Notes: generated from the letters alone by a model not told the origin. Counted from the first letter of the stretch, positions 5,509 to 57,333 are shown. The stretch is DNA of 64,000 nucleotides from Rhodosorus marinus CCMP1338 (GCA_029953675.1 JAMWBK010000005.1:2790001-2854000); one strand, 5' to 3'. A program made the numbers and translations.

Positions 5509-6853
5509 ATGGGGCCTTCATTGGTTCCCCGAGCGCAAATACCTCCGCCAATATGCTCTGATGTTCCTGGCACGTGGGCCTATGACACAATGTCTGGGAG
5601 GATTCGGACGACGATCTTGGCAAAGATTCCTCGCGAGAACGATCTTACAGAAGAAGCTCTGGCAAGGCTGGAAGATCTGGATGAAGAGCTTAAGAACGCT
5701 GGCGATTGCAAGCTGCGATTAATTCTCGACGATGGAGGTCCCGAGGTGCAAGATTGGAACGAGAGGATCTTGACGCCGTTCCTGGATCGCACCTGGCTCT
5801 CGGCTCCCTGGGCTGTCGCTGAATTCTACTTCTACCGTAGAGTTATTGAGGCCGTTGACTACTTCAAAACTCGAGAGGATCCGTTCCATCTCCAGAAGGA
5901 GCTAGGACTGAGCTCGGCCATCGAACCCATTGAGCAAGTTGTAGATAGGGTTAACGCAATATGCGGAAAACAGAGCTTCTCGGAGTTGGATTTTGCCGCG
6001 GTTGTGAAGAATGCTCTTTGGGGTAACAGGATGGATCTGAGCATCTGGCCCATCGGGGAAGCCTGCGCCGCTGGAGACTCAAACGCGCAACGTGCTGGAG
6101 ATTCGGCCAGAGGCCAGGCTGAGAAGATGATTTTATCAAACGACGTAGACCAACTGTGCACGTATGTGGCGGAAAAGTTCCCCATGGAGAGAATAGACAT
6201 CGTTGTCGATAATGCAGGATTCGAGCTGTTCTGCGACCTGTGCTTGGCAGACTATATGATTAGCTCAGGGATGGCCAAGTGCGTCACTCTTCAGCTAAAA
6301 GCTCATCCTACCTTCGTCTCGGACGCTATGGCAAAGGATGTGGAAAGAACGATTGACTTTCTTGAAAAGGTGAGCGAAATGATACGTGGCTGAACGCACT
6401 TGGCAGCTCCATTACAGAGTTTCTTATTGCGTCCGCCTTTTGGAATAACAGTTTGCCGATTCAAAGCCAAATGTGGCCAAAATTGGTCGTCGCATGAGAT
6501 CACACGTTGAAAATGGATCTTGGAAGCTTGTCGAGAACTTCTTCTGGGTACAACCCAACGCCTTCTGGGAAATGCCGGCCGATCTCAGGTCCGACCTGCA
6601 GCAGCAGAGCTCTCTCACCTTCCTCAAAGGTGACGCAAACTACAGACGGCTTCTCGGTGATTGTCAGTGGATATTTACGACGCCATTTTCCGACATCGCA
6701 AACTACTTCCCGTCCCCGATCTGCGCCCTGCGAACCTTCAAAGCGGAGATCGGTTGCGGCTTAACTAGATCATCAATCCAGGAAGCGAGTAATGAAGACC
6801 CAAACTGGCTAGTCTCTGGACGCTATGGAGTCATACAGTTCCTAATCACCTGA
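5509..6853 (+). CDS. DUF89 / ARMT1-like damage-control phosphatase (2 exons; intron ~6370-6466)
   Basis: Family motifs W..APW..AEFYFYRR, DPF..QK, LWGNRMDLS, VDNAGFELFCD, KAHPTFVSD, KGDANYRRLLGD, RTFKAE and GRYGVIQF. GT-AG intron joins the two ORFs. Confidence 0.9.
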
Positions 6854-43868: not shown

Positions 43869-44614
43869 ATGTTGAAAGTATTTGTTTCGGGTCGGAATGA
43901 GGTTGAGATGGGCAGGGCGAGAATCGCAGTCTCGGATCTCTTGAACGAGGAGGATGATGATGATGCAGTATTAGAACCCGAATCCAGCTTTGATATAGGG
44001 GTAAGGTCAATGTGAACTACCGAGCTCCTCCTAGCCAAGTTCTGGCTTTTGTTGTTGTTTGATTGAGTTTCTAATCCGCGAATGAACTCACAATTAGGGA
44101 GCGAGGCCTGACTTCCCCGAGCAGCACGAGGTGGCTAGGGGAGATTCTCTAGAGAGAAAGAACCTTGGAGCGCCGACAATTCGAAGAAGAAAGCGCTGGA
44201 CTGCAGAGGAAGATGTGCTTTTGAGGAGTCTGGTGGAAAAGCATGGACCCTTGAGATGGAATGTGATCGCTGAAAATTTTGATGGCAGGGATGGTCAGCA
44301 CCTGAGACTGAGATGGATGAATCACTTAAGACCTTCTCTGGACAAAAAGCCGTGGACACCTAGTGAGGATGAAACAATCCTCAGATTGCAGGTGAGGAAT
44401 CGCGATTGCCTGCGCTTGAGCCACATACCTTCTTTACATCCTAACGGCCCGATCGGTTCTCACGTTTTTCCTGTTCTAGAGACTGTACGGAAACTCGTGG
44501 GTCAGAATCGCGAATTCCCTTCCAGGTAGAAGTGACAACGCCATCAAGAACCGCTTCTACCTCCTGAAGAAGTATCAAGAGCAGGCGTCGTCTTCATCTC
44601 GCAGCAGAGGCTAA
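43869..44614 (+). CDS. Two-repeat (R2R3-type) Myb transcription factor (3 exons)
   Basis: WTAEEDVLL...HG...WNVIA...RLRWMNHLRP...KPWTPSEDETIL and spliced RLYGNSWVRIANSLPGRSDNAIKNRF. An in-frame 5' exon starts at ATG 43869 or 43908. Confidence 0.9.
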
Positions 44615-44898
44615 ATTGAGAATTAATAGTACTAACTAAGATACTAAGAGTGCACAAACCAAGATATGAGAGCGGGACCTTCATGTGCTGAAAATAGATT
44701 AAAGAGCTCTCGTGGAAGAGCATCGAGCTGAAGGGAACGGTTCGTGATTTTCGTAGTGTCAAGCCGTGACTTTGGGAGTCAAGGCAGCGTTGGCGGCAGG
44801 CGCTGATATGAGTTCAGGCCATTTTTCAAGATGCGAACAGTATCTAGTTTTGTTGTCTCAACGAGTTGAACAACACCAAGCCATTTTGCCGCGTTTGC

Positions 44899-45097
44899 TT
44901 GAAACCCCAAGACGTATGTAATAGGCAGCAAGTAAAAGCCAGTGACCGTCTCTGTCGGAACTAGATTTTTGGTTGAAACCGCAGTTGTAAGTCTTGATGA
45001 GGCCCTCGGACCTGGTCTGTGACTCATCCAATAGAATTCGTTATCTTGCCCAGAAGTTTATTGAGAGCTTTGCACGTGTTCGACAGTACGACCGTAC
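44899..45097 (+). repeat. ~200-bp direct repeat, copy A1 (abuts the 5' LTR)
   Basis: Aligns with 47362-47563; about 12 substitutions and one short indel. Confidence 0.95.
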
Positions 45098-45313
45098 TAT
45101 GAGAAATCCCCCTAACGGGTTGTACCCTGTCCATTTTAGTGGCAGTTACTTTCTACCATTAGTGCTAGGGTTCCTAGTTTTAGTCTCTGACAGTTTCTAC
45201 TTTCATGTCAGGTCGGTCGTAGTTTACAGTAACCAAGACTATATAAGAACTAGCTCTGCTAGATCTTGGGACCGAGGTTTGAGAAAGACAAGTTGGTTCG
45301 AAAGTTTCTAACA
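45098..45313 (+). repeat. 5' LTR
   Basis: TATGAGAAATCC...TTTCTAACA (TG start mutated to TA). About 90% identical to the 3' LTR by eye. Confidence 0.9.
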
Positions 45314-47143
45314 AACTGGTCTCATCAACCTTCTTTACGGTACGCAAGTCTGTTCCTGAAGGGCCAGGCCCAGACAGTGTACCAAGGCCTTCCCCGATCG
45401 GCGGATGGAGTAGCGGAGACGATGGACTCGCTCGAGGACCAGGACTTCGAGGGGAGCCTACGAGCACAGTTCCAGCCCCAGAATCATGTAGAGCAAGTCC
45501 GAAGGAAACTCCGTTCCGCACGACAACGCGGCCAGGACGTCAGCCGATTCGTGGACTACCTCGACGAGCTGTTCATTGATGGGCGAAAACATCGCGGATT
45601 CAGAATAATTGGACCGGTTCAAAGCGGGCTTGACCGGACAAGGGATGCCGTCCGTGAGTAAGACAACCAGCATCCAACAGACCGTCGAGTTGCAGAGGCG
45701 GGCCAACACCCTTACAGCGAAGGGTTCGATAGCTGGTAGGCCGGTGGAGTGCCTCATAGACACCGGTGCAGTCACCGCTATTCGAGAAGACTTGGTGGAC
45801 CAGGCCAACCTATAAGGACCCACGCGAATACGGGGTGGCAATGGAGAAAGCGACTGTAACCAGTCCCGGCACAACCACGACGACCATTATGATGCAAGGT
45901 GAACAATTCGCGACTAACATGCGGATGTTCAAAGCCCTAAGCCATGATGTTTATCTTGGCTTGGACTTCCTAAGTCAGCACGGTCTAACGCTGGACTGCG
46001 GGACTGAGACCCCACGGCTAGTGCTGAGAGAAGTCGGCAAAGGAGAGCAACCAAATGACGCGGCAGAATCACTGAAGGAAATAGCGACCGGGCCAGGAGT
46101 GCGAAACATAACAGTAGTGGATGCAGAAGAGGACATCGGGGACGAACACACCGACGAAGGAGAAACGGGGATCGGTAACACCCTCCGCGAAGAAAAGCGG
46201 GGGGAGGGGCATACGGGGTTAACAGTAACAGACACCAAGGAGGACATAGGGGAGGAGTATACGGACGAAGTGAAGACGGGGTTCGGTAATGCCCTGTGAG
46301 AGGAGTTCTCCCAGGTATTCCAAGAGAGTTTGCAAATGCCACCGAAGGAGCGGGAGAAACACGTGCTCCACATCACCTTAGAAGACTGGGCACGAGCTCC
46401 AGCACAAAGACCATACCCGATCTCCTTAGTCAATCGCGAATAGCTGCGGAAGGAGTTAAAGGACCTGGAGCAGCAGGGCTTCGTATCTCGAAGTAGAAGT
46501 CCGTACGCCGCGCCTGTGCTGTACGTCGATAAGAAAGACGGAGGGCTACGCCTGTGCAGCGACTACCGCCGGCTTCACGGCAGAAGACAGCGTTTGTCAC
46601 GTGCTTTGGACAGTACCAGTGGAATGTCATGCCGTTTGGGCGACGATATCCTGATTTACTCGGCGACTCAGGAGGACCACGAAAAAGATGTCCGACGGGT
46701 ATTACGCCGACTAGAGCAGCATTAGTTAGTCGTCAAAGATTCGAAGTGCCAGTTCGGAGTAATTCAAGTTTGCTACCTAGGTCAAATCTTGGTGGGAGGC
46801 ACTCGTCGTCGCGATTCAAAGAAGGTGGAGGCCATTCAGGGTTGGAAGGCCCCAACGACTGTCAAGGAAGTATGGGCATCCAGAGTATACCTCTCCGATC
46901 AAACCTATACCCGACGCAACCCGTTCTATCGGTTTTGACCTTCCGTTGTACCAACGGCATCCGCCAGTTTTTCTGTGCTACCGCGAGAATGAAGCCTGGA
47001 CTGATGCGATTTGCCTATCTGAACCCGACTACCCTACGGATACCTTGTCTCGAAGACGCCTCAAACACTACCTCAACTATTGAAAGGTGCTCGACGCTCT
47101 TCCTCCAACCTCTTGAGTTTGCGCCCAGACTCGGCGGGAGGAA

Positions 47144-47361
47144 TGTGAGAAATCCCTCTAACAGGTTGTACCCTGTCCAGTTTTAGTGTCATGTGCTTCT
47201 TACCTTTAGTGGCAGTGTTCCTATTTTTAGTCTCCGACAGTTTCTACTTTCATGGCAGGTGGGTCCTAGTTTACAGTAACCAAGACTATATAAGACCTAG
47301 CTCTGCTAGATCTTGGGACCGGGGTTTGAGTAAAGACAAGTTGGTTCGAAAGTTTCTAACA
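47144..47361 (+). repeat. 3' LTR
   Basis: TGTGAGAAATCC...TTTCTAACA with canonical TG...CA ends, preceded by the purine tract. Confidence 0.92.
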
Positions 47362-47563
47362 ATGAAATCCCAAGACGGTATATGTAGTAAACAGCAAGCA
47401 AAAGCCAGTGGCCGTCTCTGTCGGAACTAGATTTTTGGTTGAAACCTCAGTTGTAAGTCTTGATGAGGCCCTCGGACCTGGTCTGTGACTCATCCAATAG
47501 AATTCGTTATCCCGCGCAGAAGCCTATTGAGAGCTTTGCACGTGTTCGACAGTACGACCGTAC
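47362..47563 (+). repeat. ~200-bp direct repeat, copy A2 (abuts the 3' LTR)
   Basis: ATGAAATCCCAAGACG...CAGTACGACCGTAC matches 44899-45097. Confidence 0.95.
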
Positions 47564-50067
47564 CTCGCAAGGACCACTTTGTGAGCAAGAATCACACGCA
47601 CGGCCTGTCGATCATCAGGGCCTCAGCTAATCGCCGGCGAACCATAAATTTAAATTGGAGGCCGGGGGAAGTGGTGTGGGAGCACAAGGGATAGGCAGCT
47701 CACAAATCCCACAAGCCGGTGGAAAAAAAGAGGGTGATCGTCAAAACTCGAGGAAGAAATCGTCCCCCTTGGGCACAAACAAGAGAACCGTGAACCCAAC
47801 ACCTTCCCTTCCCCCCCCCCTCCCCCTTTGGGAAGCAAAGAAAAGGGCTCACACCTCTTCCTCCCTCAGAGTATGTATTCCGTGTTCCATCATGCTCTTG
47901 TCGCCAAAGACCTCCATCAAAACCTCATTGAGTGACTTTTTCAAACCCCCTCAAAACGCGCTTCGCAAAAAGCTTTCGGTTCTCCCGTTCGCCCTTGAGA
48001 AAAACCCAACTCACACCTTACCAACCAAAAAACTACTATGCAATGAAAGCGCAAGAGTGTATTTCTTCTTTCATCCAATTTCTCCTCTGCCAGCTGCTCC
48101 TATTGAACAGCGGTTAATTTCCATAATGTCCCAGTGGACGACTGATTTTAGTCTTAAATTTGTGTTGTATGAGGTTAAACGGTCCTCAGTGTTGACCGTT
48201 GGGTTGTTTAGCGGGATCAACCCCCCTCCTTTATATACCGTAATAGGCAGAGTAATTACATTCTGCTTAAGGGATAGGCGATAACAAAATGGAGATACGA
48301 CAACGACGTACGCGGTCGAAGAACGGTATAATTAGGCTTACCAAGGTAGTTGGATAGGGGTAGAGCAAAGAAAGGGGTAACTCGCCTGCACAAGAGATCC
48401 AGTTGTTCACGCTCAGAACCGTTTTTATAGGATTTTGGGAGAGAAAATAGGGCATTTCTTCATGTTTAGCTGGGGAACTGCTCGTTTCTACCGGCTGCTC
48501 GGTTCGATACGTGGTTGTGGGAGGGGTTCCTGAGGCTCGTCCTCAGCGTGACGATGACGAGGGTGACTATTCTGTTCGGTGGATTTCGCTTTGCCTTGTT
48601 TTTTTCCTCGTTTTTTTTTTTACAAGGGAGAATCCCGTTTTGATTGTTTCAGAAGCGCTTTCCTAGCGTACCTTTCACCGGGTGATGTCCTTCTCCATTC
48701 TTTCTGACTCTAGTTTTCCTCGTTTTCGCCGGAGTCTTGGTCTGCATTCACTTTCATTGTGGTTGGAAAACTACTTGGAAGATTCAAAAAAATGTATAAT
48801 ATATATTTGCAAAGTATCGCAACCGCTGGGTAGCGTTGATTGCCGGACATGCACTTTGATGAATCTGATCTCAAGGGGTATTACGGTCTCCACGCTTCCA
48901 ATCTAGTGTCCGTTTGATTGGGAACTCATTCGGAAAGAAGTGGGTTCCGATTCCTGAACAGGGTTAGGAGTACGTGGGTTCCGAGTGGACTATAGTTCTG
49001 ACAACAACTCGGCCAGGGCAGACTTATTCGGAAAACACCTCCATTAGGAAATTGGAGGTGTTTTTAGCACGCAAGCCCTTGCCCCAGGGCTTCTCGCAAA
49101 GGGGCTTCGTAATCAATTTTTACGCCACCAACTCATTGCGTGAAGCGGGAAACAGGCAGAGGAGTTTGGAGAAGAAAACCAGAAATCAGAAAAAGCAAAC
49201 CAGGGCGAGGGAGTGTGCCCTGGGAGACCACGTCACAGAGTGATACGCAAACCAGCTAGACAAAATTCCTTGCGTTCACTCTGCAGTTAAAATATCTACC
49301 CACTGACACCCGAACTGCCCCAAGACCAAACGAACGTTAAAAGTAATTAGCGCACGCAGCTCGCCCTCCGGTTTAACAGACGAGCGAAACGAATGAATTC
49401 CGATAAAAAAATAATATTGGTTATTCTAAGAATACATGCACATGAAACAATATTGTTTAACCAATGAAATCCGAGGAGAAAAACTTCGCCTTTGGAAAAA
49501 CCCACCTGGCGACAGTCTGTCATCCAGAAAACGGGACAGTCTGTCGATTTCATGTATCAATTGACATCGTACACAATGTGACGTTTTTCCAAAAAAAGCT
49601 TTCCAATTTTTTTGGAGTTATCATGAATCCATATACCGGATCATTCGAACGTTTAATTGATATGGGGGACATATATCCGTTCAATTTAGGTGTTTTGGAC
49701 AGATTTGGTGCATAATTGGGAAATAATGAGACGAATTGTACTTAATTTGGAAATATTGGGCAATTTTTGTTTCCGTCCCGGCGGAGTGTTCTACGTCCAA
49801 ACTGGCTGACGGGGACACTCCAAGCTCCGAAATTTGCATTGTTTTGACGGATTCTTTTTGGGTCGCGAAACGAAATTGGTGTGGTTTTTGACACCATTTT
49901 GGGATGTTTTTCTTCTTCGAGAAAGGAAGTAAAGCCTGGGAGGAAGTTGCTTAGTCGGGGGAGGTGGGAGAGAGGGTAGCTCGGTGGAGTGGTTTGGAAC
50001 AGACTCACCGGTTGATTGGCTTGGATTTTTTTCTATCGTTTGTTAATGGTTTGAAGCCTGAGAGAGA

Positions 50068-51928: not shown

Positions 51929-52526
51929 ATGTTGAACAGAGGAACTTTCGCAAAGCTCCGAAACGCTTTGTTCGGATCTCAAGCAAGGTAAAACCCTTTC
52001 TCGTAGCTTGTGGTTGCAGAGATGAAGTGGGCGATCCCGACTTCGATTCCGTCGGATTTGTGTATTGATTTCGTCGGCCTTCTGTCCTTTTAGATGGTTG
52101 AGTGACAGCAATCTCGTGCGAAAGCTGAACGATAGGATCTCGGGACTCCCGAAGCAGCTTGGCGTGAAGATCACTCGAGCCAAACGCGGTGGGGATATTG
52201 TAGCTGAGATGGAGATCAAGCCAATGCACCTCGCCGCGAACGGGTTTTGTCATGCAGGGTCTATCGTTACACTAGCAGACACGTCCTGCGGCCACGGAAC
52301 CTTCGCAAGCCTACCAGAAACAGCTACTGGCTTCACTACCATCGAGCTTAAGTCCAACTTTCTCGGAACGACCTTAAGCGGTGCCGTCGTCTGTGAAGCA
52401 TTCTGCGTTCACTCGGGACGAAGTACCCAGGTTTGGGATGCTACCGTGTTCATTCAGGAGAGTAAGAAAAAGATCGCATTGTTCAGGTGCACGCAGCTCA
52501 TTCTCTACCCCAAGCCGAACCCCTAG
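51929..52526 (+). CDS. PaaI-family hotdog-fold acyl-CoA thioesterase with a putative mitochondrial presequence (exons 51929-51987, 52094-52526)
   Basis: NGFCHAGSIVTLADTSCG, TTIELKSNFLG, GRSTQVWDATV and IALFRCTQ. A phase-2 GT-AG intron joins MLNRGTFAKLRNALFGSQA-R-WLS in frame. Confidence 0.88.
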
Positions 52527-53612: not shown

Positions 53613-54397
53613 GATGTCATTTCGTCATCTGCTTTCACTCTGCCTCTCCGTTCTCCACGGGCAGTCAGGTAGAGGTAGCCGCATCTGCCGGCTTCACGGT
53701 TTGGGTGTTGCTGCGAATACTATGCGGAAGCATAATGAATCCAAACATACTTCTAGGAAGGCGCTTATCAAAACTGATGCTTTGTGGTCTGCCCTGGCTC
53801 ATCAGTATATGTCCCCTTCGTTGTAGAAGTCACTTTGCCTTTCTGTTCTCCCCTCTACCTAATCCGGCTGCCAGCCGCTTCACGGTTTGGGTGTTGCTGC
53901 GAATAACTATGCGGAGGTTCAAGGAATCCCAGCATACTTCTAGGGAGGCACTTATCAAAGCTGGTGCTTTGTAGTCTGCCCTGGCTCATCAGTTTGTCCC
54001 CTTCGTTGTAGATGTCATTTTGCCATTCTGTTCTCCGCTCTGACAGCAGTCAGCTACTCCATTTGCCGGCTTCACGGTTTGGGTGTTGCTGCGAATACTA
54101 TGCGGAGGTTAGAGGAATCCAAGCATACTTCTAGGGAGGCGCTTATCAAAGCTGAGGCTTTGCAGTCTGCCCTAGCCCATCAGTTTGTCCCCTTAGTTGT
54201 AGATGTCATTTTGTCACCGCTATCATTCTGTTCTCCGTTCTGCTCAGGCAGTCAGATCGCGGCGTAGGGTGTTGCTACGAATACTATGCCGAGGCGTCAG
54301 GAATTGGAGTATGCCTATATGAAGGTGCTTGTCTGAGGCTCATCTGAGGCTTTGCAGTCTGCCCTGGCTCACCAGTTTCCCCTCTTAGCTGTAGAGG
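53613..54397 (+). repeat. Tandem repeat, four units of ~185-213 bp
   Basis: Recurring GGGTGTTGCTGCGAATACTATGCGG...CATACTTCTAGG...GTCTGCCCTGGCTCATCAG...GTTGTAGATGTCATT. Unit starts near 53613, 53826, 54011 and 54202. Confidence 0.92.

Positions 54398-55904: not shown

Positions 55905-57333
<1,429 letters not shown>

Follow-up and report, generated by a model that had tools for sequence, protein, structure and literature searches.

Retroviral-type integrases normally join the two ends of an element to positions 4-6 bp apart in the target DNA (PMC5041404). When integrase inserts only one end and host enzymes join the other, the adjacent host DNA can be duplicated over hundreds or thousands of base pairs, or deleted (PMC5041404). 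Such aberrant cases have been described for ASLV vectors with one poor end, and for HIV-1 with a suboptimal strand-transfer inhibitor or a weakened integrase (PMC5041404).

The unusually long target-site duplications (TSDs) of HERV-K HML-2 range from 18 to 450 bp and include lengths of 96, 111, 206 and 250 bp (Mamedov et al. 2004, cited in Kahyo et al. 2017, PMC5488345). For two of these long TSDs (250 and 111 bp) pre-integration alleles provide confirmation, and at one locus two additional bases separate the duplication from an LTR (PMC5488345). These HERV-K HML-2 elements are primate and betaretrovirus-like, and the insertions are recent (0-3 mismatches) and partly still polymorphic.

We describe here an LTR element in red-algal DNA that resembles these HERV-K HML-2 loci in being directly flanked by duplicated unique host DNA that is single-copy at the pre-integration site. 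Unlike HERV-K, it is an element of the Ty3/Gypsy type and an old one, with 6% divergence, whose empty site is found only in a related lineage. With the aberrant ASLV and HIV integrations it shares a long host duplication made by an LTR element, in this case of 198 bp. Those cases come from cell culture, whereas the red-algal case is a natural one.

Two other kinds of insertion also invite comparison. Devos et al. 2002 and Ma et al. 2004 are said to have described inter-element LTR recombinants in plants that lack matching TSDs. The red-algal element is likewise intact-looking and without a short flanking duplication, and recombination could build the same structure. In such recombinants the flanks are normally unrelated, or the DNA in between is lost. 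In contrast, the flanks here are two copies of one 198-bp segment, and recombination would need insertions 198 bp apart on different chromatids. In LINE-type elements, which insert by target-primed reverse transcription, TSD length is set by the spacing of the two strand cleavages, and the duplications can be long and variable. The long duplication is a likeness to these elements, but the LTRs, the polypurine tract and the Ty3/Gypsy gag-protease-RT, together with the lack of a poly(A) tail and of 5' truncation, point to a different insertion chemistry.

Architecture and identity of the element

The window, by which we mean the whole 64-kb stretch of DNA analysed, contains in order a left flank, a first copy of the host segment A (A1), a 5' LTR, an internal region, a 3' LTR, a single A base, a second copy of the segment (A2) and a right flank (Table 1). 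A repeat finder, blastn within the window and pairwise alignments all agreed on this structure. The A1-LTR-internal-LTR-A2 arrangement put forward in an earlier note on this DNA is thus confirmed as genuine. A1 runs directly into the unique left flank and A2 into the unique right flank. Between the two copies there are 12 substitutions in 198 aligned bases (p = 0.061; 94% identical) and one 3-bp indel, and the within-window blastn search matched them to each other with E = 5e-82. The duplicated unit, which the earlier note had put at about 200 bp, is 198 bp long, or 199 bp if positions 44899 and 47362 are taken as a mismatched first base. Neither blastn with a word size of 7 nor a whole-window repeat scan found further copies of A or of the LTR in the 64-kb window.

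Table 1. Features of the insertion locus and of the neighbouring gene, in window coordinates
Feature	Position	Length	Strand	Basis
R2R3 Myb host gene, three exons	43869-44000, 44098-44391, 44480-44614		+	Pfam, splice model
A1, left copy of duplicated host segment	44900-45097	198 bp	.	repeat finder, blastn, alignment
5' LTR	45098-45313	216 bp	+	alignment to 3' LTR; terminal inverted repeat
Degenerate internal region	45314-47132		+	gag, aspartic protease and reverse transcriptase remnants, in that order
Candidate primer-binding site (TGG...)	45317-45330		+	three bases past 5' LTR; read from sequence
Polypurine tract GGCGGGAGGAA	47133-47143		+	directly before 3' LTR; read from sequence
3' LTR, TG...CA	47144-47361	218 bp	+	alignment; terminal inverted repeat
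Single A between 3' LTR terminal CA and A2	47362		+	read from sequence
A2, right copy of duplicated host segment	47363-47563	201 bp	.	repeat finder, blastn, alignment

The bounds of the LTRs are fixed by three independent features, namely the terminal inverted repeat (TGTGAGAAA...TTTCTAACA, matching in 8/10 bases), the polypurine tract and the TGG stretch. Both LTR ends are complete to their terminal dinucleotides. The 5' LTR ends in CA and starts with TA where the 3' LTR has TG, a difference of one transition. Apart from this TA start, the two direct LTRs have the TG...CA ends and short terminal inverted repeats of Ty3/Gypsy elements. The LTR pair shows 20 substitutions in 217 aligned columns, plus two gap columns (p = 0.092; 91% identical); the divergence of about 10% given earlier was broadly right and is now corrected to 9.2%. 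The 3' LTR also holds a 21-bp tandem repeat of 2.3 copies.

At the left junction no base lies between A1 and the 5' LTR, the last base of A1 directly preceding the LTR. At the right junction there is 0-1 base between the 3' LTR and A2. The earlier description of both junctions as exact therefore holds on the left, where A1 abuts the LTR, and needs amending on the right, where the terminal CA and A2 are separated by one base, an A. An A likewise follows the CA of the 5' LTR, and the one at the right junction is either a cDNA base that was not trimmed off or the first base of the duplication in mutated form. The identity is weak evidence, as a chance match is expected about one time in four. Reading the sequence at the left and right junctions revealed no microhomology at either. 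A short TSD is absent as well, the outer pentamers beside the LTRs being CGTAC and ATGAA as already noted for this DNA, so that segment A abuts both LTR ends without an additional 4-6-bp duplication, as in HERV-K HML-2. A TSD of 4-6 bp would be the norm for this family, known here from one copy, if it follows general Ty3/Gypsy behaviour. Its lack bears on the insertion event and not on the classification of the element.

The coding remnants agree with the LTRs on that classification. Pfam searches of the internal open stretches matched Retrotrans_gag (5e-6), weakly gag-asp_proteas/RVP_2, and RVT_1 in its C-terminal part (5.6e-8). An LTR retrotransposon of the Ty3/Gypsy group (Metaviridae) has gag, protease and an RVT_1-type RT in this order, and its integrase lies downstream of RT-RNase H, an arrangement that distinguishes Gypsy from Copia. 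With 93 residues of the RT as query, an exhaustive HMMER search returned 9846 relatives, the best of them about 50% identical. The long RT relatives that were scanned are Ty3/Gypsy polyproteins, in which Ty3_capsid or Retrotrans_gag is followed by RVP_2 and then RVT_1; one of them (P0044) has the architecture RVT_1-RT_RNaseH-Integrase_H2C2-rve-SH3_Tf2-1-Chromo. With gag-protease-RT remnants closest to Ty3/Gypsy polyproteins, the assignment to Gypsy in the earlier note stands.

The whole element spans 2.26 kb and is degenerate. Compared with its relatives, the internal region is interrupted by four or more frame changes and four or more in-frame stops, has suffered large deletions and retains only about two thirds of the protease-RT span. 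Among the open stretches of the 3' internal part, none matched RNase H or integrase in Pfam, in line with the earlier remark that no integrase is visible; in this relic the region is gone. The last open stretch showed a motif-like, non-significant similarity (E about 1) to the C-terminal tail of pol in two relatives, which was rejected as an integrase remnant. The element is a decayed Ty3/Gypsy-type LTR retrotransposon, now a heavily deleted relic. The RNase H and integrase regions could have been lost later, or integrase could have been supplied by another copy. Since this copy is so heavily deleted, the absent integrase is uninformative on the mode of insertion. Further family copies were not found by word-indexed protein searches with the protease and RT pieces, and two conserved LTR 25-26-mers had 0 matches in metagenome contigs.

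An empty site in a related lineage

An R2R3 Myb gene (Pfam Myb_DNA-binding, E = 2.8e-18) lies about 285 bp upstream of the insertion, which is in unique intergenic DNA. The splice model of this gene yields an open 186-aa product that is 94% identical to the UniRef 'Rhodosorus marinus' protein A0A7S3EFQ1 (P0001), which derives from a transcriptome. The window accordingly belongs to a unicellular red alga that is near this species without being identical to it. The gene served as the anchor for comparison with a relative. Possible targeting landmarks were absent from the 64-kb window, which contains no tRNA gene or other Pol III gene and no Rfam family.

A Myb search match (P0004) led to L001, a 1515-bp Logan contig from run SRR32518360. 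Its Myb is 98-100% identical to the R. marinus protein P0001, against 89-95% for the Myb of the window. By these identities L001 comes from R. marinus or something very near, and its lineage is related to that of the window without being the same species. L001 aligns colinearly and unbroken over window positions 44010-44942 at 80% identity, which covers the 3' end of Myb, the intergenic DNA and the start of A. A single A-like segment follows (z = 21 for local alignment to A1 and to A2, relative to shuffles), and the contig passes unbroken from the end of A into the right flank at 47564-47645 (alignment 47516-47645; z = 15). No similarity to the element was detected in L001 (z about 0). A second, more distant relative (L002) is too diverged downstream of Myb to inform.

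L001 thus presents a pre-integration site, in a related lineage, in which the segment occurs once between the flanks known from the window, without the element. This is the unique A and empty single-A site that the earlier note had suggested looking for elsewhere. Because of it, A must be single-copy host intergenic DNA and not a part of the element: it is ordinary host DNA that was duplicated exactly around the element in the window. Segment A was also considered as a tandem or high-copy repeat, and this was rejected.

The same comparison bears on an architecture of nested terminal repeats (A-B...B-A), offered in the earlier note, in which A would belong to the element. A begins with TGAAA(C/T)CCC, which has a loose likeness to the LTR start TGTGAGAAATCCC. 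However, A ends in GTAC and not in CA, the polypurine tract and the PBS-like site adjoin the inner repeat rather than A, and the relative without the element has a single A continuous with both host flanks. The empty site contradicts nested repeats and rules out A as an element terminus, and we give this architecture almost no credence.

The Kimura two-parameter (K2P) distance is 0.064 between A1 and A2 and 0.098 between the LTRs. In a test of low power, the divergences of the two pairs did not differ significantly (12/198 versus 20/217; Fisher p = 0.27). By this low-power test the duplication is as old as the insertion, as expected of a long TSD. The earlier impression that the divergences are of the same order is borne out, and both would fit one old event. 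Non-coding divergence between the window and L001 at this locus is 20-28%, several times that of either pair. Since the pair divergences lie so far below it, the event postdates the split of the lineages, and L001 therefore represents the true pre-integration state and not a secondary loss by recombination between A1 and A2. That a secondary loss may mimic an empty site is a caveat that has been raised for HERV-K (PMC5488345).

With L001 as the outgroup, four of the changes are derived in A1 and three in A2, and five are ambiguous. Derived changes in both copies would be expected of an old, real duplication and not of one sequence assembled twice. An assembly artefact, by which A was put on both sides through misjoined haplotypes or collapsed repeats, is very improbable in our view: A1 and A2 differ at 12 sites and by a 3-bp indel with derived changes in each, both novel junctions are clean and the entire structure measures only 2.7 kb.

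The substitution types differ between the pairs, with transversions making up 11/20 in the LTR pair and 2/12 in the A pair. The excess in the LTR pair may reflect the variable 21-bp LTR repeat or two different source LTRs.

The duplication might also have come first, either as a pre-existing A-A tandem into whose exact junction the element later inserted or through successive rearrangements. Such a tandem could postdate the split from L001 despite the single A of the relative, and rearrangement models have been raised for HERV-K (PMC5488345). It would, however, require the element to hit the junction to within about 1 bp and leave the missing 4-6-bp TSD unexplained, and the similar ages of the A pair and the LTR pair also speak against it. 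We consider this order of events highly unlikely.

Joining of the element ends

The left end of the element lies at the right edge of the host segment and its right end at the left edge, which is the geometry of a target duplication. The duplication, its exact junctions, the host origin of A and the relative age are shown by the sequences. We find it moderately probable that the locus is a real, old, one-off long TSD, most likely produced by uncoupled or aberrant integration, and infer the way of end joining as follows. A Ty3/Gypsy-type element would have entered the unique intergenic DNA downstream of Myb. Its left end would have been joined at the right edge of the 198-bp segment, and its right end at the left edge on the opposite strand. 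Fill-in of the two long single-stranded gaps would then have copied the segment on either side of the element. The cause would be that the cDNA ends were not placed 4-6 bp apart by one integrase complex. Integrase may have inserted both ends, separately; alternatively, it may have inserted the left end while the right end, perhaps with the unprocessed A at 47362, was joined by host repair. The stops, the frameshifts and the loss of RNase H and integrase would belong to later decay.

In the ASLV and HIV cases the aberrant end is often truncated or joined with short homology, whereas here both ends are complete, microhomology is absent and there is no more than one extra base. The red-algal locus is in this respect cleaner than the published one-ended model predicts (PMC5041404).

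The clean ends also weigh on insertion without integrase, which the earlier note had listed among its explanations. Break repair or homologous recombination could have taken in the cDNA, or a circle carrying the element and a fragment of A, with repair synthesis duplicating A. This would account for the long duplication and for the absence of a short TSD. Yet capture driven by end joining or homology usually trims the ends or leaves marks (PMC5041404), and the LTR termini here are intact, with at most one extra base and neither microhomology nor filler DNA. These complete termini are more like ends made by integrase. Moreover, a circle with both element-A junctions presupposes the very structure to be explained. 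We therefore do not favour integrase-independent capture and regard it as quite unlikely.

One copy of the family was studied, and its structure by itself is indistinguishable from that of a recombinant of two separate insertions. In such a pseudo-TSD, two ordinary, like-oriented insertions of the same family would have lain at opposite edges of A on different homologues or sister chromatids, and a crossover within the element would have combined them. The crossover would yield the exact structure, with two complete canonical LTR ends and no microhomology, and models of this kind have been discussed for HERV-K (PMC5488345). The divergence of the LTRs (9.2%, with 11 transversions) is nominally greater than that of A (6.1%, with 2 transversions), as two source insertions predict, but the difference is non-significant (p = 0.27). 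A crossover would also require two independent insertions in the same orientation within 198 bp, in a family with no other copy in the 64 kb and no close relative in the protein libraries, and at a site where neither a Pol III gene nor any other known targeting landmark is near. A recombinant origin is accordingly unlikely in our estimation.

Returning to uncoupled integration, the 198-bp spacing itself might be non-accidental. It would then reflect two separate, precise integrase strand transfers about one nucleosome repeat apart, or a family that regularly makes long duplications. We hold both readings to be very doubtful. Either, if true, would be a natural record of an uncoupled, integrase-made insertion outside the retroviruses.

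A probable long target-site duplication beyond retroviruses

The pattern had been thought near-unprecedented in the earlier note, a view that the long TSDs published for HERV-K HML-2 (PMC5488345) and for aberrant retroviral integrations (PMC5041404) do not support. The red-algal locus is a natural example of a rare, already documented outcome. As a single decayed copy with an inferred mechanism it is a curiosity more than a discovery; a family-wide habit, if shown, would change that.

The locus has practical consequences for the annotation of such elements. Programs for finding LTR elements that demand a 4-6-bp TSD would misjudge copies of this kind. Long flanking repeats can also recombine later, excising the element and imitating an empty site.

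For the biology of these elements, the locus extends the long-TSD outcome beyond primate endogenous retroviruses and cell-culture retroviral systems to a red-algal element of the Ty3/Gypsy type. It supports uncoupled end joining as a general failure mode of retroviral-type integration.

Repeats inside the element

The 3' LTR of the decayed Ty3/Gypsy-type element carries 2.3 tandem copies of a 21-bp unit, with a corresponding stretch in the 5' LTR. When read off the LTR alignment, many of the differences between the two LTRs appear to be located in this stretch, and these may have raised the LTR divergence figure. The internal region contains an imperfect 76-bp repeat pair (72% identity), which is positioned between the protease and RT remnants and codes for an acidic repeated peptide.

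Surrounding host DNA

The region is normal gene-carrying DNA and no repeat desert. A run rich in C and T, including ten consecutive C, follows A2, the right-hand copy of the flanking host segment, on its right side at a distance of ~230 bp. Elsewhere in the window, an array of about four tandem units of 186-191 bp each was found, with unit-versus-unit identities of 69-88%.

Features in the window and in L001, the empty-site contig of a relative
Feature	Window	L001	Remark
ARMT1-like damage-control phosphatase	5509-6393		Host ORF, clear Pfam domain
R2R3 Myb	43869-44614	88-580	Three exons
76-bp repeat pair	46109-46184, 46220-46295		
21-bp repeat (3' LTR)	47181-47231		
C/T-rich run	47795-47830		
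4HBT thioesterase	52065-52526		Host ORF, clear Pfam domain
Tandem array	53682-54333		
PfkB-family kinase	56148-56939		Host ORF, clear Pfam domain

Myb gene and lineage

The Myb protein is 94% identical to the transcriptome-derived R. marinus protein A0A7S3EFQ1 in the window versus 98-100% in L001. This difference indicates that the window organism represents a Rhodosorus lineage distinct from the transcriptome strain.
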